Assembly: GCF_006345805.1 (NCBI RefSeq)
Contig: NW_021835915.1
Coordinates: 1-36,420, forward strand
Origin: Octopus sinensis
Lineage: Eukaryota
Length of the DNA: 36,420 nt
Reading direction: 5' to 3'
In this document: piece after piece, positions 3,986 through 35,690 of the stretch
Layout: each line of letters begins with the position of its first letter
How positions within the stretch are numbered: position 1 is the first letter of the stretch
Program-made: the position numbers and the translations under genes
The notes under the pieces: generated by a model
What the model was told of the DNA's origin: nothing
What the model saw: only the letters and a program-made list of their open reading frames with translations
Databases searched by the model: none

Positions 3986-4018
3986 GAATGGCTTATTAAT
4001 GCGAAATAATGAAAGTGA

Positions 4019-5784: not shown

Positions 5785-7737
5785 TGGCTTTATCCAAGAG
5801 AATTTATAAACCATTTAAAGTGCCCTTAAACGGGTATATTTCAAATGAATCTTTGGAAAGAGCTTTCGGATTCCGTCGAAGACTTACCAGAACATCTTTC
5901 CACGATCATTAAAATGAGAATGCATTAATACTATTCACCCTTCCACAATTCTCCATGGAAGAATCACTACGACAAAACGAGTATTTTAAACAAAACCACT
6001 AGAAATGACAAATTAGTTCACGTGGTTGTAGATGCATTATTCTCAAATATCCTTCGCCCACATCAACGAGAAGTTTTTCCACAAATTTGAATTTCAGGGC
6101 ATAAAATTCATGTTTGATTGTGTCACTGGAGCACAACTCACAGGTTTCCGTGAATGTATAATGGCAGATGAAATGATCGTTTAATTTTGCTAATTTTTAA
6201 GGGACTTGGCAAAACTTTGAAATGCATTTGTCTAATTTGGACTTTAATCCTGTAGTTTATGGAAGTCTCGTGGTTGATAAAGTCGTGGTGGTAACTCCAA
6301 GCAGTCTCGTAAAAGTTTATTTTGTCATTATTTTTGACATAGAATTGAGAAAGGAGTTTAAAAAGTGGTTAGATGATAAAATTTGTGTTATGACCGCCAA
6401 TGGAAATGAAAAAAACTCTATCAAGTCGATTTTGAGTGATTTGATGTTTAATTCATTTAAAGGAAGGTTTTCTGAAGAAAGAAGGTCGAATGGACCGGTT
6501 ATGATCATTTCATACGAGACTTTGAGATTGCATTGCAGTCTATTGAGAAGAATTGAGTCCAGTCTATTGATTTGTGATGAAGTCTCTGATTGTTTTATTA
6601 CCGCTTGGGGTCATCGACTAAAAAACAACAAAGTCAGGTTTACACAACATTGATGTGGTTGGCTATTCGAAGAAGAATTATTCTTTCTGGGACACTGATT
6701 CAAAATGATTTTTTGGAGTATTTCTCGTTGGTTAATTTCGTCAACGAAGAGATTCTTGGTGGTTTGTATTTTCATATTAAAGGATTGTGTTTGGAATTTA
6801 AGAAAAAGTTTGAAAATCCAATTTTTCGAGGACGGGATTTAGACATTACTGAAAGTCAAAGATTAAAGGGAGATCAAAAACTGGCTGAACTGATCTCTAT
6901 AGTGAATCTTTACATAATTCGAAGGACAAGCAGTTCCCTCTCACATTATTTTCCTATGAAAAGTCCAATGAGCTTTGTTTTATGTTTAAGGAGAATACGT
7001 GGTCTGTTGTGCTCTTACAAATCAGCAAATACAGTTATATTCCTCATTATTGAATGATCGAGAATTGGATTTGTTGGTTTTGATTTCTTCTTTAAAGAAG
7101 TTGTGCAATCGTAAGGTTGGTTGGGCCAATTTAAATTCTGCCTTGAAGGGACTGTGGATAGCGATAGTTCTGGTTTGTTGCTGCATTTAAGATAAAGGCA
7201 AGTTCAGAGTGTTAGATTGCCTGTTGAGAATAGTAAAATCATTGAGAATAATAAAAGCGGTCTAAGCTTGTTGGTGAGTTTAGTAATTCTTCTGTACTTG
7301 TTGTGTAAGTATGGTAAAATATATTTGTCTTCATGTTGAGTAGAAAGGCCGGGGACTGTGAATATTACAGAGACAGGCTCATAAGAAGGCATTAAGTGAT
7401 TGTGTGGTCGACCAAGAGGACGCTGAGAGACATTTTAGTTTGGATGATTTTCGTGAAATATCAACCCCTCTCTCGGACTCATTTAGATACACGCACGACA
7501 AGTGGGATGATTATTCAGTGGTTTAGACTTAATTGTCGGATATATGTGGGTGGAATTCAACATACTCCGCCGTGTGAGGACAGTAATTGTGCTTCTGATC
7601 TGTCTAATTAATATCATTGCAGTGATCCAAGGAATGTTTTTGATGTTGTTCTTCAAAGGGTTTTCTCTACACTCAAGGATGGAATTACATTTGTATTTTG
7701 GCATTTTTCTCATAATAGACAGAGAATTACCTTCTAA
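5785..7737 (+). pseudogene. RAD54L: RAD54 unprocessed pseudogene with micro-introns, stops, frameshifts and an internal deletion
   Basis: Recognisable segments: KPFKVP, HVVVD...LRPHQRE|GIKFMFDCVTG...CIMADEM|GLGKTLKCI, TPSSLVK, IISYETLR, ICDE|GHRLKN, LSGTLIQND, LKKLCN, GKFRVLD, QRQAHKKALSDCVVDQEDAERHFSL, ITFVF. Intron 6073-6097 is GT-AG; intron 6176-6201 has GT>AT. Several in-frame stops; helicase motifs IV-VI are missing. Confidence 0.92.
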
Positions 7738-7879
7738 TTACGCTCTGTTCCTTTTTGAGAGTAATTTTAAATGTATAGAATTCGATCTGACGGTTTATTC
7801 CGACATATTTCATTTTTATTCCACTATGAATATAAGACTTAGGGCTGGTTAATTTGTTTCTTTCGCACTCTTTTGATGC

Positions 7880-8320
7880 CCTGGCAACTTATTTCTAGAT
7901 AAGCAGCTATCAACCTAATTCACAAAGCTCTGGAAAAATCTGGTTTCCCTTCAGTTCTAGAACCGACGAGTTGTACGCTTCGAGAAGCAGCTTGTTTTGG
8001 ACGTCACTTATGCCGACTCTTTCGCCAAGGGAGCTTTGAATTCCACGGCTTGTCGACAGGGTTCGTCGGCCGAGAAGGCCGAATCTACGAAACTGACGAA
8101 ATACAAGGATTTGCGCGATCGATTTTGCTTTTGGGCAATTGCCGTCGAGACTTCCTGTGTTTTGAGGCCAAGACACTTGCTCATCTTAAGAAACTTGGCT
8201 GTCTGTGCACACATCGCTCCGAAGATCCCAGGGAATTTATATTCCTTATTCAGAAGATTTCGCTGGCTGTTTTACGCTGGAATTGTCTCTCAGTCCTGCG
8301 AGCCTGTACTTAATGGCTAG
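7880..8320 (+). mobile_element. CRE-like non-LTR retrotransposon 3' (RLE) fragment
   Basis: AAINLIHKALEKSGFPSVLEP...LDVTYADSFA...AEKAESTKLTKYKDLRDRFCFWAIAVETS...LKKLG...EDPREFIFLIQKISLAVLRWN, with an internal deletion and a frameshift. Confidence 0.85.
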
Positions 8321-10649
8321 ATGGTTTTTTTAATTACCCTTTTACATCTGAATTGTCAAGTAAATTCCTCAATCAATTCAAAGACGTACCAAAATTGGAT
8401 TCCCAGGGACAGACCAGTCACAATAAATAATTTCATCTTACGTGGGCATTCGAGAAACTTAATCTTTTGGACGAATGAGCACCCCGAACTGGATTACGTT
8501 ATCGGGGACTACTTGGAGACACATTCCCCATCCTCCAAAAAAGTGTACATTCAGTAAATGAAAGCACTCACCCATAAAACAGTGAATTTCTGGCTGAACT
8601 TATGCTCGAGGCGTTCTACGTGGGCGTAAAATACATTAGAATGCAGGCAGTGATGTCACTGTTTGCCTCTTGGGCTAAAAGGGCTGTGAACGACAGACCA
8701 ACCACTGGAATTGTGATCGACTCCGTTAATGTACTAACAAAATGTGTTTATTGAATGTTCAACTACGCTAAGAGTGCAATTGCAGGGTTATTAGGCAATT
8801 CGCCGGGCTTTAGCAATGTTACTGCTTTTGTTTGCACTACTCGCATTTGCAGAATGTGAAAATAGTCAGAGTATACATATTTATTTACTTTGAGATTATC
8901 TAGAGTCCAGTTCCATTGGGGAGGGTATAGATAAATATTTTTATATTAGGTGATAACACAAGAACTATCTTTGATGACGAATCAGGTATATTGTTTGGTC
9001 ATTTAAGAATTCTACGACCCACTTTATAATGGGAGGGACTGGCTACGAATTGGACTAAATTAACAATTCTAACTCACATAATATAATTATAACTCACCTA
9101 ACTCTTAAACAATCGAAATGATGATAAAGAGTACTCCTGTAGTATCATCTCTTCTTTCCAAGAAAATGATTTGAAAACTTAAGGAGTGACTAAATTTCAG
9201 GAAAAAACAAAATCGGTGATCATCATAGCAACTAGGGCTTACTTAAGCAGGATTGATCACTCAGTATCTAAGTACCCGTTGTGTTACTTGGAGACAAGTC
9301 CTACAATAACATTTTTATTCATACAAATATCAATAACGACATATAATTAAACGTGGTCAACTTCTTTACCAGGAATGTAACGTTTTAATTACTTTCAGAT
9401 GACCTTATCGTCCTGAGAGCCCCAATCTCCAGCCGAGGATTAGAAAAAGCTCTTTCAGAAAAACTATCACTTTTTTAAGTCATTTCCTGTCGAATTTGTA
9501 TGTGTCGCTCCGACCACGCTCTTTTTCATTCGAAGAACTTTTTACTAATCCCAAAAATAATTTACCTTCTCTTTTCACTATTTTGGTATTGACCTGAGAT
9601 TGTCTTTTGGCCATAGACGATGCTGTTGTGGATTTTTTCTGATCGATCTTAAATACTAAGTTCGTGTGTAGTATTCCGGGTCTTACAAGTCTGCGTGTCC
9701 GCTTTGGAGGAATTAGGGTCCTCTCCTGTAAAGAGCTGGCCTTTGCGTGTTATCTATTTTCTCTTTCTTTATCTACGGATTTTGTAGCTCTGTTATTTTC
9801 CACTCACTTGAACATGCTGGGCTTACGGAATGTTCAGAAGCGTTAGAGTCATGGAGTTGCGTCGGCTACTCAGTGTTTGAAAAGACCTCATTTCAAAAAA
9901 AGTTGGGACGAATTTTTAGATCTTTTTAAAGAAATGCGATTCAATCCTGACCTGCTCGAGCTGGCATCACTAGGCGCCACTTTCGAGCCACACTTTCTTA
10001 ATGTTGGTAATTACTTAATTTTTTCATCCGGGCTTTTACTTTGGCAGGAATCAGTTTGACTTAAGGTTTTGAATAAAGATTTTACATACGGACCTAGTTT
10101 TGGCGTGAGTGCATGAATTTTTTTGCCTGTGAAAATTTTTTAAAAATTCATATCTTAAAAAAATGCATTTTCCATCCATTCGATTTTTAAACCTTGTAAT
10201 TTCATATCTTATGACAATGTAAAAACAATTAAAATTACCAATTTTTTAAATAAAAGCTCCAGTCACCAAACAAAAGAGAAAGAAATTATTTATTAGGTTT
10301 TTATCAAATAGAATTATTCATTTTGGGTAGAGATCATATAATGTGTTCCAAAAAATAAAGTGTTCCAGCCATACGATTCATTTTAAATCAAAGTCCGGTT
10401 GTCCGTCTCTAACAAGCTTTCTGCGCTTATATTTTGAATATTCATAATTAATGGCATAAGCTGCCATTAAGCCTAAACTTTCTGAATTATCTATCTATCC
10501 TTTCGGAAAATTTACTCTGTTCAATATCCAGATTGAACTTTTGCTACTAAGGAACCGGTAATCAATCTCAACGCTAACTTATATATTGAGGATCTGGCCA
10601 CCGCAGTTGACTCAATTAGGAAACATATTTCTCCTCATCTAGAGAAATA

Positions 10650-11408
10650 CAGTCAAACCTCCGAATTTAATCATCTTTTGGATCGACAAAATCTTGCGAA
10701 ATTTAGAATTTGGCAATCAATAGAAATTTTGCACTTCCGGTTTTTTACTAAAAATTGAAAATTATATACGTAATTGAAATATCTGTTTCTTGTGTTTAAT
10801 TATCACATGTAATTCATTTACCATGCTTAAAACAACTCCCAATTGTTCGTTAAGTAACATTTTTCCATTCAAAATACGTAAACAGAAAGTCGTCATTTAA
10901 AATCTGTTTCTTATGTGAATCTACAAGATCAGTTCCATTGTCAATTTTGTCTAACATTGCTTAGAACGGCAAAAATCAGTAATTCCGCGTAGAACGGCGA
11001 AAAAGAATTGTCGTCCATGAATCCGCCACGAGGTTCTATCCATGTCACAACTTTTGTATCAATAGTTGAATATGTTAGATTGAATGGGCGTTTTTTGCTG
11101 AGAAAAGAGGATCACTATCAAGTAATTTTTGTTTCTCAAGACCGAGATCATTTTTTGATCTTTGTAAAAAAATTTTTCGCACGATTGAAGAAAAAACAGC
11201 GGCTATATGTTCCATTTCATATGTTTTTAACATCGATTAGAATATTATGCATCTTTTTTAAGTCTACTACACTTGCGCATGTTTTAACCCAAAAAATTTT
11301 TTAATAATGAAAAGTAGTGGCGAGATTTAGAAGTTGGCGAGAAATAGAGGTTTCTTTAGAAATTTTCCTTTTTTTGAAAATATGTGGCGTGCGATAGAGG
11401 TTTGACTG
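10650..11408 (-). mobile_element. Internally deleted pogo/Tigger element with both TIRs and TA TSD
   Basis: TA|CAGTCAAACCTC...GAGGTTTGACTG|TA, plus subterminal TGGCG repeats. Minus-strand remnants TYSTIDTKVVTWIE (HTH start) and EWKNVT.RTIGSCFKH (DDE_1 C-terminus). Confidence 0.85.
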
Positions 11409-11689
11409 TAACACAGAAATGACTGTTCTTTTTAAATACAATGAACAGAGGAGTCTTCTGGCATGCATAATTGCTTAGTCGAAATTTTTTTTTCCAAATG
11501 GAGAAATAGTAAAAGAGTTCTTTTTATCTGGGAACGAACTCAGTATTAAACGCGTTGAAAGCAATTATCTCCTCTGGAGGCAAACAGGCCCGCTTAAAAA
11601 CGAGGAGTCACCAATGGTGGTTGGTTAAAATGCTACCCCTGTTTGAAAGCGGAACGTTTGAACTTACTCAGAATGAAGATTATGCTCCA

Positions 11690-11929
11690 CACTGACACCT
11701 CAGTTGGCAGCCTTGCTTCCGAGGAGGCGACGCAGAAGAATGGACAGGGTTTCCTACGTTTCTGCAAGGAACTGGGAACTTCTCTGTCTGGAAAAATTAG
11801 TGTCATCGTCGACGACGAAAAAATAGAATGTGTTGAAAGTTATATCTTTCTTGGAAGTCTGATAACCAGAGATGGTGGTTGTGACTCAGAAATTAATAGA
11901 CGGATGGCTATGTGCAAGAGTATGATGAT
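11690..11929 (+). mobile_element. RTE-clade non-LTR fragment (endonuclease piece fused by deletion to RT C-terminal piece)
   Basis: KNGQGFLRFCKE followed by IVDDEKIECVESYIFLGSLITRDGGCDSEINRRMAMCKS, typical of RTE/BovB-like ORFs. Confidence 0.75.
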
Positions 11930-13578
11930 TAGGGCAATTTTTTTCAGGCACTTAAAATTTATTTTTAGGACCTTAAAAATAGGCATTTTAGGACTTTATT
12001 TTTAATTTTTAGGACTTTATTCTACATTTTTAGGCACATTTTAATAAGGTTAAATCAAAAAGTCGTAAAAAATTATTTGTTATAGTAAGGTATTAAATAA
12101 TTTTGACATTTTCCGCATTGAAACCTCTATCTTAGTAATTAATTTTTTAAGCATAGAAAATGCTCTTTCAACGGTTGATGATGTACACTGACATTTTCTT
12201 ATTAGTCCATATTCTTCAGGGGAGATATTACTTTTCTCCATTTCTATAATTGATTCTATGTCATTTTGTGTAATCTTTTTTGTATGTATTCATTTATTTC
12301 TGCATTATCAGACGGAAATTTTAACAAACAAAGATCTGAATGTGCATCATTTATTGTATAACTTGTGGATTCCATTTTTTCAATATTGATTAAGTATCTG
12401 ATAATTTTCATTTATTTCCATTAGACTTTTTCTTAAGGTTGGCGATTCAATTGCTTGTTTTACTTTTTAACTAATATTCCGTCGTCTTTGAAATTCTCCA
12501 CAATTTCAGCAATTGATACAAAATTATTTGCATAATAGTATGCTGCTTGCAGCCAACTACCCCATCTAGTTATGATGACGTCGGGCGGATAACCAATTGT
12601 AGAAAACATTTTTTTTCTAGTTTTGTTTTTCACTATTGATGTCTTTATAGTCGCAATAAGATTATCAACGTCCGAATAATACGCCTTTACTCTGAGACAG
12701 CAATTATGTAACAAATGTGCAACACATGTTACATGGAACATCCTAGGATAAAGCATTTTCAATGTTTTTCCGGCTAAAATAATTCAACAAACTACCCAAA
12801 ATCATATACGGGGCTGCATCAGAAAGAAAAAGAAGAAAATTATTGCGTATAATCTCGAATTTTTTAATCTCTTCATCGATAATCTGAAGAATTGTGTTAG
12901 CAGTTACAGATTCATATAAAGGTTCACACGAAATTAAATAGGTCTTCTCTGGATAAGCGATATTCCCAATGAGAAACTACAAACTTCTGTCCATTTACGT
13001 CACCCTCGTCAACAACCATAAAAATCTTTTGAGATCTAAAATCTAAGGATTGTTGAATAGGGAATCTAAGGATTGTTGGAATCCTTCATTGTTATCTAAA
13101 AAAAATAATTTTAAATTACTCAAAAGCTTTAGATGTTTTGTAGATTGTCTATGCTGATCAATATAATATTTTTTTGATGCATTGACGTAGATCATACATA
13201 TTTTACAATATAGACTGCCTTTAATCACTGTGAATTCTTTTACGTAAGTTTCATAGGCTTTTAGAGCTTTAGACTTTATTGTAGAACGTACACGTGGCAT
13301 TTGAACACAAAAAAGTAATTTATAGCGTGCCTAATTTGTTATTTTTAAAATATTTTTTTGTAACATTTAAAAATAATTTATTTTAAAAATTTTTAAGACC
13401 TTAAAAAAATTTTTAGGACCTTAAAAAAATTTTTAGGACCTTAACAATTTTTTAAGCATTTAAGGCATTTATAACTCGTTGTAGATAAATCTATTTTAAT
13501 TAAATTATAGCTTAAATTAATTATTTAAATAATAGACCTTTTGGTGCAAAAAGGCATTTTAGGCAAAAAATTGCCCTA
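11930..13578 (-). mobile_element. hAT-like transposon (CGGBP1/DUF659-type transposase), degraded
   Basis: TIRs TAGGGCAATTTTT / AAAAAATTGCCCTA; subterminal TTTTAGGACCTT repeats. Minus-strand pieces: LYCKICM...IDQHRQSTKH (BED-like finger), VVDEGD, FLSDAAPYM, HVTCVAHLLH, ITRWGSWL, TSSTVERAFSMLKK. Confidence 0.88.
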
Positions 13579-13914
13579 GTCATCATTCAAAACCTAAAGA
13601 AAAATGCGTTTCACGCAGGGTTTAGTAATGCAACGTAGAACATTAAAAATATTAAAAATGCCTTTCGATTCCGTCAGATTAATTCCGCATATTCCCGTGT
13701 TTGAAAGTCTCACAATGAAGATGAGTTTTTTTAACAAATATTATTTCCAACGTGTTTTCTTTACAGAATAATTTGTGAAATCATGGATGATGACACAAAT
13801 CTTTCACAATGGCATATGAGTAACTAATTACTTTAATTAGTGAGATTCGAATGAAGAACTTGAAATATCTAAGTTGGCTTCAGGCATTGGCAGGATTCAT
13901 AATAATTTGAGGAT

Positions 13915-14100
13915 CAGTTCGGCGAAGAGGTAGTTCCCCCAGAAAATTGAGACCGAGACGCGCTGGAAGAGCCAGCTCGTCCTTCTCCGGTCATTGATCT
14001 TTGATGCGATTTTTTCGCCCACCAGCCGTAACAACTTTTCAGCTTTTATAACGACCAGGCAAGTGGTCTCGAAGGCGAGGGCATAAATTCTTAGGCCTCC
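13915..14100 (-). mobile_element. CRE-like non-LTR retrotransposon 3' (RLE) fragment
   Basis: Minus strand reads ALAFETTCLVVIKAEKLLRLVGEKIASKINDRRRTSWLFQRVSVSIFWGN. Confidence 0.75.
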
Positions 14101-14504
14101 GAAAGTTTACTTTTAATCTTAAGCGGAACTAATTAATGACTTTTATTTACGAGAAATATGTCATAATATGTCGCGTCCCATGGTGGTTACGCATCCCATG
14201 CTGGCTACATGTCACCTGTCAATCAATCATTTTTACGAGGTCATTGGCTGTCAGATGTCATAATTAATGTGGTTTAATCATTCGTTACTCGTGTGGGCAA
14301 TTTAATATTTTTAGCGTTATTATTCAATTTTCAACATTCCTCTTTAAAATGTATTCCCCTGTATATGTAACTAGCTCAGCAGTTCGCTTCGCTCACTGCG
14401 AGCTAGCTCCTGCGGAGGCCCTGCTCGCTACGCTCGCAGTTTCCTTAAATAACTATAAATTTATGTAGATATATAAATGCGACCTGCTTTGATATAACCT
14501 TATT

Positions 14505-15310
14505 CTAAGGCCTGTGGATAAACGATGTTTGCAGTCCGTCCATCCTTGGCAAATATAAATAAATTTCTCTTCTACCTACCCTTGAGCACCCCACATACAG
14601 CTGGCCATGTGAAAAGCACTCGTTCTCTAAAAATAAGCCTACTACCTTTAAAGACTGTCCCTGGGCCTTGTTTATTGTCATAGGGCCTTTGTTATCTTCA
14701 GCGGAAATTGTAGTCTCTTAAATCTATCGCAGGCCCTTTCATGGTCCATAATAACGTCGACCGATTATTATATTTCTTCTCTGCCAGGGATTTTCATTAA
14801 TAAATCTAAATTTATATTAAGTACCTCATCATTAAGTGGAGCTAATATAGCTCGTTCACGCAGCCAGTCGAAATTCACGTAGTGTTCAGATAGTTCGGAA
14901 TAGACGGCATTCAATAATTCTTCTGCTGTTTCTACGAAAATACATAATTCTTCCGGTAGCCTAATTTTCTGGTCGTGCATTTCTGAAGTGATTGCCCCAT
15001 TTCCAATATCTAGAAGGATTTGGGGAATATGCTATTAACGCCTTGTAAATGTGCATGTACATTTACATCTAAGCTTACCTTTTTCACGTGTGTCCACAAA
15101 TATGACGATTTGAGGCAGGCATTCAATTCATCCGCAGGCGTCCCTCTTTGAATAATTGGCAGCGTCTGTCTAAAATCACCTGCCAATACAACTAATGCTC
15201 CCCCAAACAAATGGTCGCTACAATTCTTGATATCTCTATATGTTCGGTCAACTGCTTGAATGCGCCTTTATGAGCCATCGTACATTCATCCCAAACAATT
15301 AACCTAGAAT
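14505..15310 (-). pseudogene. Helitron RepHel PIF1-like helicase remnant, internally deleted
   Basis: LIVWDECTMAHK, FGGALVVLAGDFRQTLPII, ACLKSSYLW, WLRERAILAPLND, then after a deletion [11 protein letters not shown]...[15 protein letters not shown]. Confidence 0.9.
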
Positions 15311-16023
15311 GCATAATTCTATTACCCGTAGTTGAGTCTAACAGCAGTCCTGACCTTGTTCAGCTGTTGTCTAAGTTCCCTCACCATTTAAGCACATCTT
15401 CCCTCGTTTCTCTTTTTTTGTTATATGGTTCATATTCTCTTGTTTGTTAACATTCTCAGATCTCTCTTTATAGGACATTCTTATGATTTTGTAAACGCGA
15501 ATCAGTAATTTATATTAAATTTTCTACGTAAATTTATTTAGTGAAATTTATGTAAAGTGTATTATCCAATCAAAGCCATTATACTTAATTGCCTCTATGT
15601 TTAAAGGAATTGAAACTTTAGCATAATCGAACTTGTCTGTTTCGGTAAAGAAAATGATAATCAGCTTCATCTTTGTAGTATTATAAGGAAAAAAATTAAA
15701 GCCTGTTAAATCAAGGAGATTTAAATATAGGCAAATTGAAATTTACATGACTAATTTAAATTTTATTTGCCTCTATCTTTTAAGAAATCTAAACAGTAGC
15801 ATAATCGAATTTGTCAGTTTCGGCAGTTAAAAAGAATCAATTATGTAAATCTCTAATAATTTTTGCTTTTTCCTTTTTAGTGGTTTTCAAAATCTGATAA
15901 TTGCACAGTCTATTCATGGTCGATAACAATTAGAGCTTTTATTTTATTTTTTTAACGAAAATTTAACAAAAAAGAATTTATGTCATCGAAAAAAGATAGC
16001 TAAGCTAATTAATGGCCTCACGA

Positions 16024-19647: not shown

Positions 19648-19689
19648 CATACCATTTTATTATTAAGATAATAGGTTTTGTAAAAAATA

Positions 19690-22789: not shown

Positions 22790-23789
22790 AGAACTTTATG
22801 ACTCATGCTCGCTTTGTACCTGCCAGAAATTCGTATGTAAATCTACTTGGAATCGTAAATGTGATTCTTGCCATCATTTCTTGATCTGTCATGGTTTGAC
22901 TTATATGCTAAAGTTGACTTTGTAGTAAAATCTAACGAACGTCAATTATCTCAAATCTATATCGGAATTTTTAAAGCTATTTTATTATAAAAACTATCAA
23001 ATTCCAACGTCATTACAACAATTTGTTCAATTGGTTGCCATACTTCTTCCAGGAAATCAACTCGGCGAAAAGCTCAATATTTTGGGTTGGAGTTTGGAGA
23101 ATTTTAATAGATATTCTAAAGTTATTCAATGTTATAATAATTTTAGAATATTGAAGTTGAAAACGAGCAAAGCAAAATATCAAAAGAAGAAGAAAACTTT
23201 ATTTTATTAAAAATTAAAAAACAAAAACTTTATATAGATCATAGCCAAGCATATACCTCAAAACAGTACAGACTAAATGATTCCAGGAATACCCAACATG
23301 CAACGTTCAACGTTGAAAATTTATATCAAAATAATTCTCCAATTTTAGGAATGTTTATGTACTCTGTCTTTCAATACCAATATGGGCTTTATATGCGTCA
23401 AGTTTATGAAAATTTCACCAAGCAGATGCAAAATTTTGTAATACAGAAAGCATTTTCACAAGAGCAGTTAATCAATAGCTACGCAGAAAATAGTGAGCAT
23501 AAATCCAAGAAAATTTTTCATTCCAACAAAATTTTTATGGAGGTATCATAACTGGACGAAACGGAAAGAAACGAGTTCTCTGTAGCAAATGTGGAAAGAC
23601 ATTTTGCAACCGAGGAGCCTTAAAAATACATGTGAGTGCAGTCCATTTGTGTGAATCTCATTACTGTACTGTACTGGCTGCAAAATGAGCTTTTCTTCCA
23701 GAAGAAGTCGGAATAGACACAGTGCTAATAAAAATCCTAAATTGCATTGTTCAACGCGTTTTTTAAGGAAAAAGTCAGAACCCCCCTAA
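22790..23789 (+). pseudogene. BNC: Basonuclin/disco-like zinc-finger gene, frame-disrupted
   Basis: N-terminal domain CSLCTCQKF...RKCDSCHH...CH and IPTSLQQFVQLVAIL...LNILGWSLENFNRY. The finger pair KKRVLCSKCGKTFCNRGALKIHVSAVHL..SHYCTV.GCKMSFSSRRSRNRHSANKNPKLH closely matches the basonuclin/disco consensus. One unambiguous 1-nt deletion at ~23675; the other frame changes could be micro-introns. Confidence 0.85.
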
Positions 23790-24189
23790 GGGATATCACC
23801 AAAATGATTTCAAAATCAGATTTATCATATCAAAAAATGTGATTGTCTATATTTCTAACATTTCATTCAAATTAAGTGAATTTGTTTTCTCATTTTTACT
23901 ATCGAAAAATTATTTGTTTTGATCTAATTACCACTTAAAAAGGTTCAAAGGGATTAGATTTCGCTACCCCAAAGACCTCACTTCTCGATTTCTACCACCG
24001 CTGTACAATTTCTAATTTCTAAATTTGGAAATTTAGTTCTAGGAAAATTTGAAGTTAGAAAATCAAATTTATCACGCTTTGCAAAAATATTTGGTTATCA
24101 TGCGATCTATAAAGTTTTCGTCTCTCTCAACGTCTTTTCCACTTAATTAACATAACAATTTCCCATTAGAATACGAAAGACAGGACAAG

Positions 24190-27100
24190 TAACATTTCGT
24201 GATTCCAACACGTAGGAGAAGACTCCTCGTTTTGACCCGATTTTCCTCACGAGTACCCACGCAAGCGCGCAGTGGTTGTGCCTCAGATGATGCCTCCTTT
24301 AGTGGATTACAAATCAAATGGATAACGGCGCTGAAATCACATCCGTGAAAAACAACGAGCCTTCTTGGTTCAACACTTTTGATGAACTACTCAAAACTCA
24401 AAGGGATTAATGGGATTTAAGATATTCCTGATAAGTTAAACCTTGGAGACTGTCTTGACTTTTATTTTGCTTGTAAATTTTGAATTTTATTTGAATTATC
24501 AAAATCACCCGAACCAATTGTTTTTTACAACCATGTTAAATCTCTTTATCATCGTTTTTTATTCGCGAGAATATTTCTTGTCTTTCTCCTGAAATGGCTA
24601 GTCGGATATATCTAAGTGTCAATATGAAGGACGAATCTGTTGAATTTAAGAAATTATTCAAAGAAGCTAAATCTGAGACTTACGTTTTTTTGAAGAACAA
24701 TTATTTTCCGAATTTTCCTTTTATCTTCTGAATATCTCGAATTTTTAAACAATACTGACGTTTTCAAGCCCGAACTGAAAGCTTACAGCCATTAAAGTTG
24801 TTTAAACTTCTCTAAATCGAAAATATGTGGAAACATCCAAGTCAGCAAATAGTTAATACTTATTTATCTTATTTTTTAGGTAAATAGACCCTCGATATCA
24901 ACCAAGTTCGGCTCTCAGTGATTCAAGGACTTTTGGGAATGAACTTTCTTCGAGAATCAAGAATAAGAGTAGTAATAGAACTCAATGGTTGTTATTTAAT
25001 AGTTCGATAATAAAACAGGGCAATGAGAAGTCCTTCGATCTCTCTCATATTCAACCTGATGATATTCTAGAGCAGGGGTCACCAAACTTTTTGCACACTC
25101 GCGGGCCGGATTGACCCCAACACAATGAACGCGGGCCGGAGCACGTGCATAGGATTAATAATTTTACTAGAAATTCATAAGTGTGTTTTTTACAATAAAA
25201 ACTAATTTAAACAAAAATAAAGTAAACACAAATTTTAATGAGAGCTATGGAACTGTGATCTTTTTTTGATAAGTTCATCAATATTTGGTTTTAAATTGCT
25301 GCATCCTATCATGAGAATTGATTTTAAGTGTCCGTCAGTCAATCTTGCACGATGGGCAGACTTAACATATTTCATCCTCGAAAACGTTTGCTCACATTGG
25401 TAAGTTGTGCCAAATATAGAAATCATCTTTATCGCAAAATTCTTTAGTCTCGGAAACTCATCATCCTTGAGATATTCGTAGAACTCAGCGAGTTTGGTCC
25501 GTCTGTGACAATCTTTGAGCTGTTCATTTGATTGTAAGTCAATAACTTCTAATTGTAATTCATGTTGAACATTTTCAACATTACAAGAAAATGGATTTTC
25601 GAACAAAATTATATCGCTTTCAATTTTGTCAAGTTCAGAAAACTTATGTAAAAAATGATGTTTTAATTCTTTGATAATTCCAATTTGGAAAGTAATGTCG
25701 ATCTCATTACAGTTTGCCTCACAAAAACTTTTAAAACAAGAAAAGTGTGAAAACTGACGTACTCCAAGTTGTGACTCGAATAATAACATCAATTTTTGTC
25801 GAAATGCTTTAATTATCCTGTAGAAATCACAAATTAAGTTTTCCTTCCTTGTAATTTCAGATTTAGCTCATTCATGTGAGTTGTAACATCAACCAAAAAT
25901 GATAATTTTGATAGCCAAGCAAGATCTGATAATTCGGATAATAGTTATTTTTACTGGTTAGAAAAATATCAATCTCACTTCGGAGTTTTAAACTATTTAA
26001 TACATTACCACAGCTAAGCCATCTAACTGCAGTGTAATATGGTAAGTCAAAATATTCAGATCCAAAATCGTCAAGTAAAACTTTAAACTGACGGTGATTA
26101 AGTGAGCTCCCTCGAACAAAGTTTATTATGCGAATAACTGGATTCAACACACATGAAATATTAAGAGCCTTCGCACATAGTGCGTGCTGATGAAGGATGC
26201 AATGAATGAAACAGTGTTTGAAATATGTAATTCCTCCAATTTATTAGTTATTTGCCCAACTAGACCCTTTTTAGAACCAGCCATATTCTTTGCCCCGTCA
26301 ATCGTAACACAACTCAGTTTCTCCCATTCAAGGTTATAGTCACTTATAGTTTGTTCCAATTCATCAAAAATATCTTTTCCAGTGGTTTTCCATGAATAGA
26401 ACAAACAGATGCCAGTTCTTCAGTTATGGAATATTCTCATCAACTCCACGAATAAAAATAAGAAGTTGCGATGTTCCCGAAATGTCAACTGACTCATCCA
26501 ATGCAAGAGAATACCACAACATATTACTTGTCTTTTCACAAATTTGTATATATATTTTTTCCAAGCTCTTCAGTTCTCCGTGATACAGAACTCGCCGACA
26601 AACTTATTCCATCAAATAAGGAAGATTTAGTGGGCACAAACAATTAACTGCTTCAATAATGCAATTTTTGATATACATCCCATCACTAAAGGTTTCCCGT
26701 GTTGTGAAATAATTTTCGTTATCTCGTATCCAGCTCTTGTTACATTTCATTATTTTCAAATTTTTTTTTATAAGGCCTTGTTGAATTTGTAAAGTGCGTT
26801 TCAGTGATTCAACTTTATCCTCACGTAGCTTTCCAGTGTACTTGGAATATATCGGAGCATGATTCGTTTCATAATGACGTCGAATGTTATACTCCTTCAT
26901 AACAGAGAGATGTTCGTGGCATATTAAACAATAAGCTTTCTGCTTTAATTCATCTTTCGCAAAAAAATACTTCAATTCCCATAATTTATTGAATACACGG
27001 CATTCGCGGTCAACCTTTCTGTCATATTAGACATAGCAACAAAGAAAAATTTAACGTTAATGCTGATAAGTTTTTTTTCGAATTAAATCTTGCAAAATAG

Positions 27101-27735
27101 TTTATTTTTTAATTAAAGTTTTTATTTAAGTTATTATTAAGGTATTAATTGAATATCTCGAAAGTGCGCGGGCCGGATAAAATGTTGTCGCGGGCCGGAT
27201 CGGGCCGCGCGGCCGTAGATTGGTGACGCACGTCTGTTCTAGAGGAACATATCTCAAAATTATGGGATAAACACCTATTAAAAAAGCTTCAATTCCTCTG
27301 AATATAAAGTCCGGATCTTGTTTTGCTCAAAGACTTAATGAAACTGTGTTAATCGTAGTATATTTACTTATTAATAGGTAAGGTCAATTAATTTTAGCAC
27401 TGAGAAATTTCCATACTTGTTTAGCTGCTCCTCAGGGCCCTCTTGTGGTTGGGTATCAATTTTCCAATGAAAAATTTCCTTTTCGACTATAGTTAATAAA
27501 CCTACAATTGATTTGAGAGCTTTTTAAAAATTGTGGGAAGGAAAGGATCTTTTCGGTAAAAGTTTGCAGCTATAATTATTTTAAAATATTTTTTTAAACA
27601 GCTTGTTTTGATTTTGACTCTTCTGTTGCATTTGTAGAACTTTTTAATGATTCAGATGAAGTTCCCCTCTGGGAAGGAAAAGTATTTTCAAAGATTTTCC
27701 CGAGCTGTTCTGATTGGTCTCACTTGTCAAAATGA
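24190..27735 (+). pseudogene. AXIN: Axin pseudogene (RGS, GSK3-binding, beta-catenin-binding, DIX), split by a hAT insertion
   Basis: RGS: WFNTFDELLK..GLMGFKIFL..LGDCLDFYFAC...KSLYHRFL...FKEAKSETYVFLKNNYFPNF.LSSEYLEF. GSK3-like motif TFGNELSSRI (24929-24958). QPDDILE|EHISKLW is rejoined across the hAT. DIX: LVVGYQFSNEKFPFR...GRKGSFR|YFFK...FDFDSSVAFVELFNDSDEVPLWEGKV. Multiple frameshifts and stops; the 5' boundary is approximate. Confidence 0.88.
25073..27236 (-). mobile_element. hAT transposon (SPIN/Charlie/Buster, GTF2IRD2/EPM2AIP1-like), near full length, frameshifted
   Basis: 8-bp TSD TTCTAGAG (25065-25072, 27237-27244); TIR CAGGGGTCACCAAAC with a degenerate partner; GCGGGCCGGA subterminal motifs. 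Transposase ~27034-25235: CLICH...NIRRHYETNH, IDGAKNM, LPYYTAVRWLS, FGTTYQCEQTFSRM. Confidence 0.95.
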
Positions 27736-28158: not shown

Positions 28159-28430
28159 ATGGATAAATATTCATTTTCAAAAGTTCTCGGAGATGGAACG
28201 TATGGAATTGTATATACGGGGATTGTTAAATCAACTGGAGACAAGGTTGCAATTAAAAAGTATTTTTTTAATCAAATGATATTTTTATTTCAACAAAGAA
28301 TGAGAAAAAATTATTATTCGTGGGAGGAGTGCTTAGAATTAACCGGCGAAATTAGTTTTAGAAGACATAAATTTTAATAAATGATTTTTGCAGTTCTAGA
28401 AATGTTTCCATTTAGCTTGAAGTTTATTAT
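28159..28430 (+). pseudogene. MAK: MAK/ICK (Ime2-family) kinase 5' fragment
   Basis: MDKYSFSKVLGDGTYGIVY...VAIKK|MRKNYYSWEECLEL (cf. LGDGTYG...KRKFYSWDEC) with a 39-nt intron. The rest of the kinase domain is not recognisable downstream. Confidence 0.8.
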
Positions 28431-29140
28431 TAAAAATGGATGATTACCATAGAAATCGAAAACAGTTTTTGGGAAATCAGATGGCAAAGGATGAGGAATC
28501 AAAAATTTCTCAAGATATAAAATAGTGTTAAAATTCACGTATGTATATAATATGTTTTAGGGATTATGAAACGAATGATTGTTTGTTGAAGATGGAACTT
28601 GGACCTACATACAGTCAGTTGTGTTGAAAAAAAGACTCTGTCCGTAGGACATAATCAAAGTTATAATCCCACACGTGTAACAAGCGAGGCGATCTTCTGG
28701 ATTATCCTAAAAGGTTTACTTTCTTTTCTTGAAAAAATCGCATAGTCATCTTGGAAGTATGACATGGTGCCATTGTATAGGGCCTATAGAATAAATCAAA
28801 CCCACATTAATTAGTTTTCTTGTCTGCTCTCTTGGCTTTCTCCCTAACTTTAATTTATGGGTTTGTTGGGAAATAAAACTTGTCTTGTCTTGTCGGCTGG
28901 ATATTCGAGAAAAATGATTAAAAACACAACACTCCAATCTCAATTTTGTTACTCCATATCGTTAACCTCAGATTATTTTTAAAATTCATATTCACCATAA
29001 TTTTATGTACTATAATAAATATTTATTTATGCATAAATTCATTAATTTCTAATACAAAAATCTTAATAATAAATGGTATGGTGTGTGTCTCTGTCTGTCT
29101 GTCTGTCTGTCTGTGTGTGCACACCAACTTCAAATTGGCA

Positions 29141-29650
29141 ATACGATGTCCTCGACTTACATGATGAGGTCCTTAAAACCTTCCCTCCAAAAAATTAAAA
29201 AAAATTTTCTGCATTTTGGTTAAAATGAACAACTACGATGTCCTCGACTTACATGATGAGGTCCTTAAAACCTTCCCCCCAAAAAAAATTAAAAAAAAAT
29301 TTTCTGCATTTTGGTTAAAATGAACAACTACGATGTCCTCGACTTACATGATGAGGTCCTTAAAAACCTTCCCCCCAAAAAAAATTAAAAAAAAAATTTC
29401 TGCATTTTGGTTAAATGAACAACTACGATGTCCTCGACTTACATGATGAGGTCCTTAAAACCTTCCCCCCAAAAAAATTAAAAAAAAATTTCTCCATTTT
29501 GGTTAAAATGAACAACTACGATGTCCTCGACTTACATGATGAGGTCCTTAAAACCTTCCCGCCAAAAAATCAAAAAATATTTTCTGCATTTGATTAAAAT
29601 GAACAACGTTAATGTCCTCGACATTCATGATGAGGTCCATTAAAACCTTC
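29141..29650. repeat. Tandem array, 91-95-bp unit, 6 copies, homologous in reverse complement to the 16-19 kb satellite
   Basis: The gtcctcgac core recurs at 29148, 29240, 29335, 29430, 29523 and 29614. The reverse complement shares catcatgt.agtcgaggac and gttgttcattttaac.aaaa.gcagaaaa with the long array. Confidence 0.95.
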
Positions 29651-29844
29651 GAGGCAAAAATCTCACGTATTAAGAATATCCTTGATGAAAACGACAGCAA
29701 GAATATTAACAATTATGACTCCCAATTATTCGCGATAAGAAATTCAATTCATCCTATGATTTTCTCTTAAAATTAATGCATATATCATTATCGACCATGA
29801 ATCAAAATTAAAGCTATTATCATATTTGACTTTGACAGAATGTG

Positions 29845-30055
29845 CAATTACAGATTGCACGACTTTGAATAGAGTGTGCAATTAACAGATTTTGAAAAAC
29901 CACTTTGATAGTTGAAACCACATTAGCACAATCATTAACACAATTTACCACCAATAGACACACGACCTGAATAGAGTGTGCAATTAACAGATTTTGAAAA
30001 ACACTTTGATAGTTGAAACCCACATTAGCACAATCATTAACACAATTTACCACCA
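29845..30055. repeat. Two-copy ~110-bp tandem duplication inside the Helitron
   Basis: gaatagagtgtgcaattaacagattttgaaaaac...cattagcacaatcattaacacaatttaccaccaat occurs twice. Confidence 0.9.
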
Positions 30056-30699
30056 ATGACAGCGCAATCAGAAGAATTTGCGTAAAAATTAACTATTTAG
30101 TTAAGTTTTTCGTAAAGATAGAATTTATTTTCGGTATGCCTCTTTCCTAAACTTTTTATTATTCAAAAATAATTTTTTCAATAGATAACCGAAGGAGGAA
30201 GACGACCTTAAGAAAAGAAGTTTTTCTTAAAGATAGAATTTATTATCTGTAGCCTCTTTTTTCTAATATTTTTTATTATTCAAAAATAATTTTTTAAATA
30301 GATAACCGAAGGAGGAAAACGAAGCTGAAGAAAAAACGGTCAGCTTAGGTAATTAATTAAATCTTTTTTGTGTGTCGCTTTTTTGGCTGCTGCTACTCTG
30401 CCTGCCGCATCTCTGCCTGCCCCATCTCCAGCTGCCCCATTTCGCCAGTGGTTTGTCTAATCAAGGTCACTAAGCTAAATCTCCGGACTATAAAGGCTCT
30501 TAAGCATTATCTTAATTGGCTGTTAAAAAAATTAGACAGGTTGTTGCCGTGGCGGCAGAGATTTTTTTTGTTTATACTATTTCACAAATTTTTAAAGTTT
30601 TTTTTTTTATTTTTTGTTTTAAATTATTTTTTTTTATTTGTTTTTTTTTATTTTTTTTGTTATTTTCTAAAAATTCAACCGGATTGAATTTTTAAACTC

Positions 30700-31144
30700 C
30701 TTAGATCCCTCTGGAATGCCGAATCATCTTTTAAAGTTAAAGATAGCCGTTCAGTGGTTTTATTACGAAATCTTGCGCCACCTAAATTATGCAACGGAAC
30801 GAGGTTAGTTATCAAAATTTGATGGCTAACGTAATAGAGGCGACGATATTAACAGGTAAGTATAGAGGTGAGGATGTTTATATTCCACGAATTCCGATAA
30901 TTTCTGATGAATTACCATTTAGATTTAAAAGGCTGCGATTTCCTTTGAGGATGAGTTTTGCAATGACAATAAACAAGGCCCAGGGACAGTCATTAAGGTA
31001 GTTGAGTTATTTTTAGAGAGTGAGTGCTTTTCACATGGACAGCTGTATGTGGGATGCTCGAGGGTAGGGCAGAAGAGAAATTTATTCATATATGCCAAGG
31101 AAGGACGGACGACAAACATCGTTTATCAACAGGCGATAGAATAG
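30700..31144 (+). pseudogene. Helitron PIF1-like helicase C-terminal remnant
   Basis: PSGMPNHLLKLK..VVLLRNLAPPKLCNGTRL...IPRIP...[27 protein letters not shown]...[15 protein letters not shown]...TNIVYQQAIE*. Confidence 0.93.
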
Positions 31145-31559
31145 GGTTACATTAAACCAGGTAGTTTTATACATCTACATAAACTTATAGTTGTTTGATG
31201 AAACAGGCCCTCCGCAGGAGCTAGGTCGCGGTGAGCAAAGCGAGCTGCCGAGCTAGTCTGTTATAAGACGTATTCCTTCATTTCCCGAAAATCTTGGCTC
31301 TTCTGAGAATACAACAATAATCTAAAAATACATGTCAATCACTAAAGATACACTGTTTTCTGTAAAATGATCTTCTTCATTTTAAATCCCGCATTGGCGT
31401 CCTGATCCTGCAGTAGGTTGCTTTTTGACTGGAGGGTGTTCAATTGTGATTTCTCACAGTCCTGTTATGTATAAATTTTTAATATCCCCTCCATTAACAT
31501 TAATATGATTGATAAATTTCCAAAAATTAATTTCCAGCAAAATCACTATTTTATAAACA

Positions 31560-32010
31560 CAGTTTGACGAAAATCATCTGTCGATCTCTTCGAACTGCTG
31601 GATTCCACACACAATTGAAACCTATAGGGATTTTTGTAGAGGACGGCAGAAGACCCAATGGGATGACCACATTTCCATTTCAGAGGGGAAAGTGTCTGGT
31701 TTGGGGACGTCACGTGTGTGAACTCCTTTTCCAATCTGAATATCAAATTATGCATCGAGAATCCTGGAGCCCCGTCTGAACGGGCTGAGAGAAAAGCTGC
31801 TGAGAAATACGCTGGAATTGGAATTGGAGAGTGTTTGTTTCCCTGGCTGTTGAGACGTCAGGAATACAGGGGCCTTCTACTCGGACCCTACTCCAGCGCA
31901 TTGCCTCATTAATCGAAAGGGTTACCGGCGACCGTGTGAGCACCGGTATTTAATCGAACAAATATCTATAGCCATAGTCAGAGGCAATACTCTGGCTATC
32001 TGCCAATGAC
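31560..32010 (+). mobile_element. CRE-like non-LTR retrotransposon 3' (RLE) fragment
   Basis: IICRSLRTAGFHTQLKPIGIFVEDGRRPNGMTTFPFQRGKCLVW.VTCVNSF...AERKAAEKY...LAVETSG...IEQISIAIVRGN. Confidence 0.88.
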
Positions 32011-32460: not shown

Positions 32461-34340
32461 CAGTACGACCCCGGTTTGGGGCAGCATTTTTATCATAGTG
32501 CCCCAAAAAGCGGGGGTGCCCCAAAATGCGAGGGTAAAGATTTTTTGCTTTTATTTTCTCCTCAATAGATTTTTATTGCATTTTAGACTATAAATTAAAA
32601 TTATTTAATATTAATAAAAATTCTAACATAGTCCTTTCTAATAAAATTTAAAAATTTTAATAAATCCAACAAAAAATACTATTAAAAGTAATCAGTAATT
32701 TTCTCACCGAATTGGTTTTTTTTCAGTTCTCCTGATAGGTTTTTTCTAAATTCGTAGTAGATTTTCAAAAATTGTGGACATGTACTGAAAATATTATCTT
32801 CTAGAGAATTCACGATGTTTATGATTTCTTTAATTGATGATTTTTTAGATTCATATCCATCATAAGTAATTTTGTCCTCAATAATATCTGTCGAATCCAT
32901 TGAAATAACATCTGAAATCACGTCATCTATTAATTCTTCGTCCAACTGTACATTATCCGAAATTTTTTGATCTGTTTTCATTTATTTTCTGCCAGCAATT
33001 AATTATCGTTGTCTCTGACATCATTTTCCATGCCTCCCCGACAACTGTAATGACTTGTCTAAGATTGACATTATTCAAATTCAAATCAGAAAGCTGTTCT
33101 TTTTCAAATATAAGAGTAAAATCAATCAGTTTATTGAAATAGAGGGACTTGAAGGATTTTATTATTCCCATATCTAGGGGTTGAATTAAAGCGGTCGTAT
33201 TTTTGGGAAGAAAAAGTAAATAACATTGGAATATTCTGTATTTCTGTGACAGCTCGCATTATCCAGTATTAAGACAATTTTTCTCTTTTCATTGATCATA
33301 TCTTGATTTACTTTCCATAACCATTTCCCAAAATATCACTAGTCATCCACGAATTTTTTGATGCAGCATATAGTACTCTCCGTGATCCTCAGCGTTAAAA
33401 TTTTTTAAACACCTAGGAGATTTGAATTTTCCAATTAATAGAGGTTTTAACTTTTCACCAAGTGCATTACAACAAAGGAGAAGGGTAACTTTCTCTTTGC
33501 TCATTTTAATTCCATTGCATTTGTCATTAAATTGAACAAAAGATTTCGACGGCGTTCGCTTTATGTATAAAGCTGTTTCATCACACAGTTAAAATATTTT
33601 TCACTTCCTACAGTTTCCAAACAGTTGTCATAATCAGCAAAAAAATTGGAAACCGTAGAAAGGTCAGATGAATTCTTTTCTCCACTTATAGTTTTAAATA
33701 GCAACTCGTGTCTTTTCTTGAACCGTCTAGCCATCCATTTGATGCCTTAAATGATTCATAATTTATCTTTTTAGATAATTTTTTTGCAATCAGTTTTAAG
33801 ATAGTTCCAGAAATTGGAAGAAATTCATCTCTCAGACGTAGAAAAGTTTCAAAAACTAATCTATCTAATTCATTATTTGGATCATGTGATTCCTTGATTC
33901 TATCGGATTCAGTTAATCCCGCGTCAAAATAATAAACAAAATTTTGTTTAATGCGAGAATAGTACCTGTAATTAATAATTAGTTAAAAAAGATACCTTTG
34001 CTCGTTTTATACTTTTTAGCAAGATCTCTTTCTGAAAATTGACCATGTTTTATATCTTTAGCGATTTTAATTTTTGTTTCATAATTAATCTTTGAATTCT
34101 TTTTACGAACCATACTAAAGTCAAAATAAACACGTGAAATAATAGTATTAATTAATAATTAATAAATAAACTAACATTTTGTAATTAAATAAATTAAATA
34201 AGTGCCCCAAACCGGGGTCATCAAAATAAATAATAGAATGAAAAATTTACTGTTTTCAAAAACTGCCCCTAAAAGCGGGGGTGCCCCAAAACCCGAGGGT
34301 GCCCCACCCATGGGGTCTGCCCCAAACCGGGGTCGTACTG
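32461..34340 (-). mobile_element. pogo/Tigger transposon, full length, degraded transposase with a 30-nt intron
   Basis: 24-bp perfect TIR CAGTACGACCCCGGTTTGGGGCAG with TA TSDs. ATG at 34113; intron 33966-33995; motifs FKASNGWL, KVTLLLCCNALG..KLKPLLIGK, LPKNTTALIQPLDMGIIKSFK, AWKMMSETTIINCW. Confidence 0.93.
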
Positions 34341-34803
34341 TATTACTTATTTTTTGTTAGTAAATCTGTCATCTACTGTTGTTGATTTGTTATATGGAAC
34401 GTGGAATGACTTCTTGTATTTGTTATTCAACTATTTCCCATTCTCTTGGACTAAAGTAAGTTTTTCAGGACTTATGAATAACATATTTTCTTGATCTGAT
34501 ATCAATTTTCATTATGTTTGAGGGAGTTGAGAGAGCATTTAATTACCCAGAAATGATAAAAATTGGCGGTCTTTTGTGTAAATTAGGTGATTTGGGTAGT
34601 CTCGGATGAGAAAATTTGGTAAACTTAGTGGGGGGATTTTTTATATTGGAGGTCATAATCTTCACGTGTGCCACCCAATATAAGTTAAACGATAACCGAT
34701 CCAAATTTATTTATTTATATATATTTTTTCAATATTATAGGTAATACAAACAAATTATTTATTAAATTAAAAATATTAATAATTTTAAAAAAACAATAAT
34801 AAA

Positions 34804-35690
34804 ATGCATCCTTGCACGTTTAAATCATGTGACAAGTCATTTACTCGTCCATACAAATTAGAAGCACACATTCGAACACATTTAGACGAGTAATGACTAA
34901 TTATAACAAAAATATTAATAGAGACCATATATCTGCAATATTGACTGGTGTAACAAAGCATATACACGCAAACAACATTATTAAGACATCAATCCATCAG
35001 TCATCCCACCAAACCACAAGAATAACAAAATTAAAGTTATAGCATTTTTAAAATTTAAAGTTGTCCATTCGAGGATTGTAATGCCACTTTTGTGTGTCTG
35101 AACAAACCTTATCTCGACACAAAATAGATTTCATTCATTCAATTTGAGCTGAAATGTAACTTCAATCAATGTGATGCCACATTTCAATAAAAGACAACTT
35201 TTTTGTCACACCAGGAAACATGTGAGGGATAATATTTACCAGGAACAATTTTGTGTCCACAAACGTCAACATAAACAGAAGGGTATATTCAAATACTATT
35301 TGTATTTTAAATTTTTAGTCGAATTTTAATATATATTAAATTAATAATGTTTTTAACAGAATTTATTTGTGGTCATTGTGGTACGTCTTTTTCATCAAAA
35401 CGATCACTACACTCACACAATCAAATATGTCTTTTTGTGCAATACGATAAAAACTAAAAGTTTTTACTTGCGAATTTCCCCTCTGCTTAAAAAATACACA
35501 ACAAAGTCCAATCTTCAAAGCCATATAAATCGAATACATAAAGGGGTCACTTTTCCTTGTAAATTTGGAGATGGGTGCTCTTTGACTTTTTCTTCTAAAG
35601 TAGAATTTATTCTACTAATATGATAGCAAAAAATGAATGAACATTATAAAAATGTACATAAATAATATTATTTTATATTATTTTTTTAAT
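34804..35690 (+). pseudogene. Multi-C2H2 zinc-finger gene (TFIIIA-like), frame-disrupted, with micro-introns
   Basis: MHPCTFKSCDKSFTRPYKLEAHIRTH...RPYIC...CNKAYTRKQH, CPFEDCNATF, CNFNQCDATF, CGHCGTSF, KSNLQSHINRIH, FPCKFGDGC. A damaged splice donor at ~34890 and several 1-nt indels. TFIIIA identity is only suggested by finger spacing. Confidence 0.75.

Follow-up and report, generated by a model that had tools for sequence, protein, structure and literature searches.

The window analyzed here, a stretch of 36,420 nucleotides (nt) that makes up the entire contig VCDQ01006995.1 of the Octopus sinensis assembly GCA_006345805.1, holds the remains of five intron-bearing genes on its plus strand: a RAD54 gene, a putative basonuclin-type zinc-finger gene, an Axin gene, a putative MAK kinase gene and a putative TFIIIA-like gene. 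The stretch is AT-rich (G+C content, 33%) and abundant in mobile-element remains, and the only RefSeq gene call within positions 1 to 12096 is the open reading frame (ORF) of a Tigger transposon. A first-pass annotation, made from the sequence alone, had described five decayed, intron-bearing genes on the plus strand, and all five were indeed found to be disabled, with stops, frameshifts, splice-site changes and deletions among the lesions.

The RAD54 gene (5634-7610, plus strand) is a non-working relic. The joined reading of its pieces matched 581 RAD54-family proteins, and tblastn with three RAD54 proteins returned collinear segments that run from residue ~64 to the C terminus in changing frames. 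Pfam recognized the SNF2 domain with an E value of 5e-15. Members of the family combine an SNF2 ATPase core with a helicase-C domain; in the relic, the N-terminal and SNF2 parts are present, while two internal deletions, with junctions at ~7255 and ~7360, took out the helicase-C motifs. The coding sequence is further interrupted by an in-frame TAA stop at 5909-5911 and by 1-nt frameshifts near 5960, 6250, 6345 and 6620. Two splice sites are changed, the 26-nt intron at 6176-6201 having AT instead of GT as its donor and the acceptor at 6607-6608 reading GG instead of AG. Three further micro-introns kept intact GT-AG termini, at 6073-6097 (25 nt), 6315-6342 (28 nt) and 6963-6990 (28 nt), and we classified the gene as a nonprocessed pseudogene.

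The Axin gene is split in two by a transposon. Its 5' part (24300-25072, plus strand) comprises an RGS domain with stops and frameshifts and the central region up to the insertion, and its 3' part (27245-27700, plus strand) resumes the frame across the target-site duplication (TSD). In the PDB, the best match of the RGS remnant (~24330-24770) was the Axin RGS domain 1dk8, with a weak E value of 0.023, and that of the DIX remnant (~27430-27700) was the Axin-1 DIX domain 2d5g, with an equally weak E value of 0.016 (Pfam DIX, E = 0.05). One frameshift and two in-frame stops interrupt the DIX remnant, which keeps a GT-AG intron of 40 nt (27562-27601). An N-terminal RGS domain and a C-terminal DIX domain in a single gene define Axin, and both were recovered here in that order and on one strand, at weak E values of ~0.02. 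The inserted element (25073-27236, minus strand) is a degenerate hAT transposon with matches to Dimer_Tnp_hAT (E = 3e-6), zf-BED and zf-C2H2_12. It is flanked by the 8-bp TSD TTCTAGAG at 25065-25072 and 27237-27244, and its ends read CAGGGGTC... and ...GACGCACGTCTG. It thus displays the 8-bp TSD, the terminal inverted repeats and the dimerization domain that characterize hAT elements.

The three remaining relics could be assigned to broad families. At 28159-28375 (plus strand) lies a CMGC/MAK-like kinase stub consisting of a start codon, the GxGxxG loop, an intron of 39 nt (28260-28298) and a second exon. Only 59 codons are left; downstream kinase motifs were looked for after the stub and none was found, the remainder of the gene being missing. 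The stub matched Pfam Pkinase with an E value of 1.5e-4, and its PDB matches were cyclin-dependent kinases. Its motif YYSWEEC is one that we take to be MAK-like, a subfamily that could not be verified. The zinc-finger relic at 23147-23790 (plus strand; zf-C2H2) contains a C2H2 finger pair at 23560-23770 that is split by one frameshift and matched generic C2H2 proteins only. Its signature, FSSRRSRNRH...NPKLH, is presumably that of the basonuclin/disco type, again a subfamily that could not be verified. The relic at 34804-35610 (plus strand) is broken by stops and frameshifts; it comprises seven C2H2 fingers and has a GT-AG intron of 32 nt (34890-34921). It matched TFIIIA entries (E ~1e-17), but generic poly-zinc-finger proteins scored higher, and the seven fingers compare with the nine tandem C2H2 fingers, in a TFIIIA-specific order, by which TFIIIA is recognized. 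For relics of this kind, scanning the joined plus-strand ORFs with Pfam proved not sensitive enough. Of the five names proposed in the first-pass annotation, RAD54 therefore stood and Axin stood on weak matches, whereas MAK, basonuclin and TFIIIA are unconfirmed and serve here as putative labels.

Across the block, GT-AG introns of 25 to 40 nt were kept at six sites, together with disabling lesions in coding sequence and at splice sites, as expected of nonprocessed pseudogenes. The view that these are not retrocopies was thus borne out, as were the kinds of damage that had been listed, namely, stops, a GT-to-AT splice-site change, large deletions and a transposon insertion with a TSD. Capture of gene fragments by Helitrons was also considered and rejected, as the relics lie outside both of the head-to-head Helitron remnants of the window.

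Two other contigs of the assembly carry versions of the left part of the window, VCDQ01007651.1 (L008) and VCDQ01003200.1 (L009); in the latter, an EB1 gene that lies to the left of RAD54 is present and the RAD54 relic is absent. L008 is 100% identical to the window over positions 1-2209, 97.3% identical in the EB1 region and 97.2% identical in the RAD54 region (5276-8047), and it is 99.3% identical to L009 over 10 kb. In its copy of RAD54, L008 carries the same TAA stop, AT donor and GG acceptor, the same frameshifts at 5960, 6345 and 6620 and identical junctions for both deletions. Since the lesions are replicated there, they are not assembly errors, and from this comparison we judge them to predate the split of the locus versions. 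Assembly error was one of the two cases that the first-pass annotation had named as undoing its claim, and it is the least probable of the explanations weighed here. The genes would then be intact in the animal, and the frameshifts would be long-read consensus errors in a contaminant contig of low coverage. The spectrum of differences between the window and L008 is indeed error-like: between window positions 5276-8047 and L008 positions 1354-4112 (2.8 kb), 42 mostly 1-nt indels, often in short homopolymers, stand against ~15 to 20 isolated substitutions. Differences so rich in indels resemble slippage in neutral DNA or errors of a long-read consensus, and frameshift counts therefore need caution. 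However, every key RAD54 lesion is common to the independently assembled L008, and neither the stops, the AT and GG termini, the deletions of more than 100 nt and the 2.2-kb TSD-flanked transposon nor the truncated kinase are indel errors. The complete identity of the first 2.2 kb to L008 and the frameshift-free, intact genes on other contigs likewise speak against poor consensus. The contrast between that identical stretch and the indel-rich RAD54 region could reflect either uneven polishing or a strongly indel-biased neutral mutation. A degenerate haplotype, which had also been suggested, is disfavored, because the three locus versions have the same dead RAD54 or none, and never an intact one.

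To the left of RAD54 the picture changes. A sixth gene of host type, absent from the earlier list, encodes EB1/MAPRE on the minus strand (4020-4797). One intron of 31 nt comes after the ATG, and another of 25 nt separates the CH domain from the EB1 C-terminal domain. The frame is open but for 23 nt (4554-4576), where the three copies vary most; these 23 nt could belong to a 44-nt GT-AG intron, and EB1 may still be functional. Its G+C content is 45%, compared to 29 to 36% for the relics. That EB1 is a processed retrocopy of an octopus gene, as its GC-rich and seemingly intronless sequence might imply, was rejected, given the lack of a close octopus match and the presence of the 31-nt and 25-nt introns. 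In the linker (4219-4291, minus strand), 36 nt are duplicated in tandem, so that the peptide ...NSEV(A/V)SLK... occurs twice. A long ORF that overlaps EB1 in a different frame (4279-4551) is probably just a consequence of the high G+C content of the coding sequence. Beyond the left end of the window, L008 (15950-16690, minus strand) and L009 both carry an intact gene for PSMB2 (proteasome beta-4) of 205 amino acids. It has introns of 28 (GC-AG), 24, 81 and 24 nt and no frameshift, and it matched solved PSMB2 end to end (E = 8e-42); RefSeq called it on neither contig. The dead zone is thus delimited: it runs from RAD54 (~5.6 kb) to the right end of the contig, at least 30 kb, and beyond 5.6 kb every one of the five genes is disabled.

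The structure of these genes bears on whose DNA this is. Among ~15 billion proteins searched, the best matches of the RAD54 relic were 42 to 51% identical and those of EB1 38 to 55% identical, spread over many phyla and with no cephalopod among them; molluscs stood no nearer to the relics than did other phyla. Octopus nuclear DNA would be expected to show genes nearest to cephalopod or mollusc orthologues and long introns, and the window shows neither; no octopus-type gene or flank was seen on the contig. A flatworm W chromosome, a rotifer and Oikopleura, sources that the AT-rich sequence and the short introns might suggest, were set aside, because the Tigger ORF matches O. sinensis records and the window is a contig of that assembly. 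Its introns, 25 to 40 nt long, are in contrast of the size expected of dicyemids, whose spliceosomal introns are mostly shorter than 30 to 40 nt, with a median of 27 bp (PMC6543705). Among animals, introns so short have been reported only for dicyemids and myxobolid myxozoans (PMC6543705, PMC13644364). Dicyema japonicum was collected from O. sinensis, and its genome has 48.9% repeats, 5,012 genes, a single Wnt gene and a BUSCO completeness of ~76% (PMC6736024). Compared to the published Dicyema nuclear genomes (Lu et al. 2019, PMC6736024; Zverkov et al. 2019, PMC6543705), the present DNA shares introns of 25 to 40 nt, many repeats, highly divergent proteins and, with D. japonicum, the host, and it differs in G+C content (33% here, 36.7% reported). 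We therefore consider, on the grounds of intron size, divergence and host rather than of a match to a named dicyemid sequence, that the contig filed under O. sinensis is almost certainly nuclear DNA of a dicyemid, a Dicyema-type kidney parasite, and contamination of the octopus assembly by the octopus's own dicyemids is most likely, as the economical reading. The first-pass annotation had the right ingredients, decay in a parasite among them, and missed that a different organism sits within the octopus assembly.

Related contigs point the same way. Other contigs of the assembly carry the transposons of the window at 97 to 100% identity. On one of these, the 1.29-Mb contig VCDQ01000492.1, a Tigger copy (99%) lies 3 kb from an intact PRIM2 gene of 456 amino acids, whose eight GT-AG introns measure 25 to 38 nt and whose product matched solved PRIM2 end to end (E = 1e-100). 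The same contig holds an intact SLC6 transporter gene with introns of 24 to 36 nt, uncalled by RefSeq. In the part of the contig that we inspected (L004; VCDQ01000492.1:195619-216044), ~3.2 kb of coding sequence was free of frameshifts. Features at 1950-4050 and 12990-14600 of this part correspond to PRIM2 and SLC6, together with an ADAM gene with an intact HExxH motif; the RefSeq model of PRIM2 on the contig is a truncated "octopus" protein of 310 amino acids. Exact look-ups of the spliced PRIM2, PSMB2 and EB1 models in the protein collection found nothing. Because intact genes with micro-introns must be under selection in a genome able to splice such introns, the window, the related contigs and their transposon families belong to the micro-intron organism. 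Three contig pairs (L002/L006, L003/L007 and L008/L009) are 99.3 to 99.6% identical over 10 to 20 kb; they could be haplotigs, parasite strains or very recent duplications, and the micro-intron genome is in any case represented more than once.

These observations also bear on a transfer from parasite to host, in which a multigene piece of dicyemid DNA, tens of kilobases long, would have entered the octopus germ line and, being unexpressed, would have decayed while octopus transposons invaded it. Such a transfer would predict the simultaneous death of every gene, the contig does sit in an octopus assembly, and its transposons match sequences annotated as O. sinensis. Yet a 99% identical transposon among intact micro-intron genes on a 1.29-Mb contig marks the element as a resident of the micro-intron genome, and the intact PSMB2 beside the locus shows purifying selection and splicing of 24-nt introns. 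Transfer would moreover need the same young transposons in both genomes, the contig lacks any visible octopus-type gene or flank, and the three divergent versions of the locus are what a parasite population would give. We thus regard transfer as highly improbable.

How, then, did five neighboring genes die within a dicyemid genome? Termini are changed in 2 to 3 of ~11 recognizable introns, and ~5 to 7 point stops occur in ~3.4 kb; as a rough estimate, such substitution-type damage points to just a few per cent of neutral divergence in all five genes after they lost their constraint. Independent death of five neighbors in so short a time is very unlikely, which argues that constraint was lost block-wise. 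The intact PRIM2, SLC6 and PSMB2 genes on the sampled related stretches, where no scattered relics were seen, support the same conclusion. The commonest cause of a dead block that still bears its introns is redundancy after segmental duplication. We tentatively favor this explanation, to which we give somewhat less than an even chance: a redundant duplicated block that decayed neutrally under transposon invasion. A compact, gene-dense, micro-intron block would once have carried RAD54, then the basonuclin-type, Axin and MAK-like genes in direct succession and, farther on, the TFIIIA-like gene. This block would have lost selective constraint as one unit, most likely because it was one copy of a segmental duplication with a functional counterpart elsewhere in the dicyemid genome. 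Neutral decay would have followed, as point stops, altered splice sites, small indels and internal deletions built up in the block and mobile elements inserted into it: Helitrons and their 95-bp satellite, hAT, Tigger and pieces of retroelements. Redundancy itself we infer, the parent copy not having been seen, and the suggestion of a decaying segmental duplicate in the first-pass annotation is thus favored and unproven; its alternative of a whole-genome duplication found no support.

The known blocks of segmental-duplication pseudogenes resemble the present one in their kept introns and gene order, similar disablement and later transposon insertions with TSDs. Here, in contrast, the parent block was not seen, a live essential gene adjoins and the genome is a compact one with micro-introns.

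Several points weigh against a redundant duplicate, and most of them lend themselves to the opposite view, that the original single-copy dicyemid genes are dying in place as part of extreme reductive evolution. A search of the ~15 billion proteins, which did not extend to the assembly itself, gave only distant matches to RAD54, EB1 and the TFIIIA-like gene and no close paralogue. This evidence is weak, because the intact dicyemid PRIM2, PSMB2 and EB1 models are absent from the collection as well, which seems to be without dicyemid proteins, and because RefSeq left the intact SLC6 and PSMB2 genes uncalled; missing close paralogues thus cannot decide between duplication and loss in situ. The intact, essential PSMB2 gene and the near-intact EB1 gene adjoin the dead zone as in an ordinary chromosomal neighborhood, which decay in situ would fit equally well. 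Lesion density is uneven among the genes, with 0 to 1 lesion in 730 nt in EB1 and ~1 per 100 to 200 nt elsewhere. The assignment to dicyemids is based on gene structure and host instead of on identity to a named dicyemid sequence. Finally, gene loss in D. japonicum is heavy (5,012 genes, one Wnt and, at ~76% BUSCO completeness, ~24% of the core genes missing; PMC6736024), and real loss of Axin, RAD54 and others, a ciliary kinase and a developmental zinc-finger factor among them, is therefore plausible in a dicyemid. In a variant of this view, invasion by transposons and satellites may have silenced the region first.

Loss in place resembles the unitary pseudogenes of reductive genomes, such as those of Mycobacterium leprae, host-restricted symbionts and microsporidia, in that a parasite with extreme loss holds relics of conserved genes, with repair and signaling genes among the casualties. 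The relics are here clustered in one zone, however, and the other sampled stretches hold intact genes rather than scattered relics. Five adjacent deaths within a few per cent of neutral divergence are also very unlikely if independent, and if the zinc-finger gene truly were TFIIIA, a membership that is unproven, losing it should be lethal. Gene loss in progress in a parasite, which had been among the earlier suggestions, is the main rival and a serious one, although we hold it to be rather unlikely.

Loss of constraint over a whole block could also arise if the zone belonged to a special compartment of the dicyemid genome, germ line limited, eliminated or heterochromatic and nonrecombining, in which genes degenerate together. 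DNA elimination and extrachromosomal circles have been reported in dicyemids, satellites and transposons dominate the zone, and structural polymorphism among the three locus versions is strong. Such circles are mentioned in one of the dicyemid genome papers (PMC6543705). Against this stand a live essential gene within ~6 kb and a sequence devoid of any mark of an elimination boundary, and we consider a special compartment improbable. The papers on dicyemid genomes (PMC6736024, PMC6543705) do not discuss nuclear pseudogenes, and RAD54, Axin, TFIIIA, MAPRE and basonuclin are unmentioned in their text and supplements.

Besides the hAT element in Axin, the window harbors further mobile elements and repeats. 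A Tigger/pogo DNA transposon with DDE_1 and HTH_Tnp_Tc5 domains occupies 909-2288 on the minus strand and is represented by two RefSeq protein isoforms (P0265 and P0266). Its ORF at 1383-2288 (minus strand) is 95 to 99% identical to proteins annotated as O. sinensis, and DNA copies at 97 to 100% identity were found on six other contigs. A second, degenerate Tigger/pogo-like element lies at 32685-34158 on the minus strand (DDE_1, E = 4.5e-12; HTH_Tnp_Tc5, E = 1e-7). The exact 620-bp tandem duplication at 2210-3497 (100% identity) includes pieces of an IS1595/ISXO2-like transposase, as read by eye; it could be a very recent duplication or an assembly artifact, and the L008 version of this stretch is longer.

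A Helitron remnant with a 95-bp satellite and an (ACAG)n repeat spans 14370-19673 on the minus strand, with a PIF1 helicase at 14508-15447 (E = 5e-19) and 36 satellite copies at 16024-19423; the region is 97.8% identical to contig L002 over 2.7 kb. A second Helitron remnant, inverted relative to the first (29059-31257, plus strand), contains (CTGT)n, five copies of the satellite (29142-29650) and a helicase fragment at 30686-31141 (Pif1_2B, E = 6e-9), so that the two Helitron-satellite copies of the window are head to head. The satellite, also present at 13356-14510 of L002 and 22103-22542 of L003, was always joined to a Helitron remnant and (ACAG)n, indicating that it is carried and spread by the Helitron family. 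A retroelement integrase fragment at 19782-20650 (plus strand) matched Pfam rve below the cutoff (E = 2.9e-4). Four fragments, at 31-294, 7903-8317, 13900-14106 and 31531-32006, belong to a single unclassified element and have in common the C-terminal motif ...FCPIVVETTG...FLKKLG...LLQLISVAIVRGNA...; a Pfam search with these four fragments gave no match. An Rfam search gave no match either.

The finding is a new example of two known kinds, a block of nonprocessed pseudogenes and a parasite hidden in the assembly of its host. Like other parasite or symbiont contigs misfiled in host assemblies, this DNA shows foreign gene structure and divergence under a host label, and RefSeq proteins bear the name of the host. 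It differs in its large scale, with at least one contig of 1.29 Mb, and in that the contaminating sequence comes from an animal phylum that has itself been sampled poorly, which makes it a useful long-read resource. The RefSeq genome of O. sinensis thus appears to hold dicyemid contigs of up to 1.29 Mb, in which case some "O. sinensis" proteins, such as the Tigger-like XP_ entries and the truncated PRIM2 model, are parasite proteins, and parasite proteins under an octopus name can mislead studies of cephalopod gene families and of horizontal transfer. The same contigs offer long-read sequence for a phylum that is scarcely represented in genomic data and whose members rank among the most gene-poor animals reported. 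A block caught in the middle of its decay with its introns in place could serve to date and order gene loss, whether it is a duplicate or a real loss, and it would show how junk rich in transposons is tolerated even where introns are minimal.

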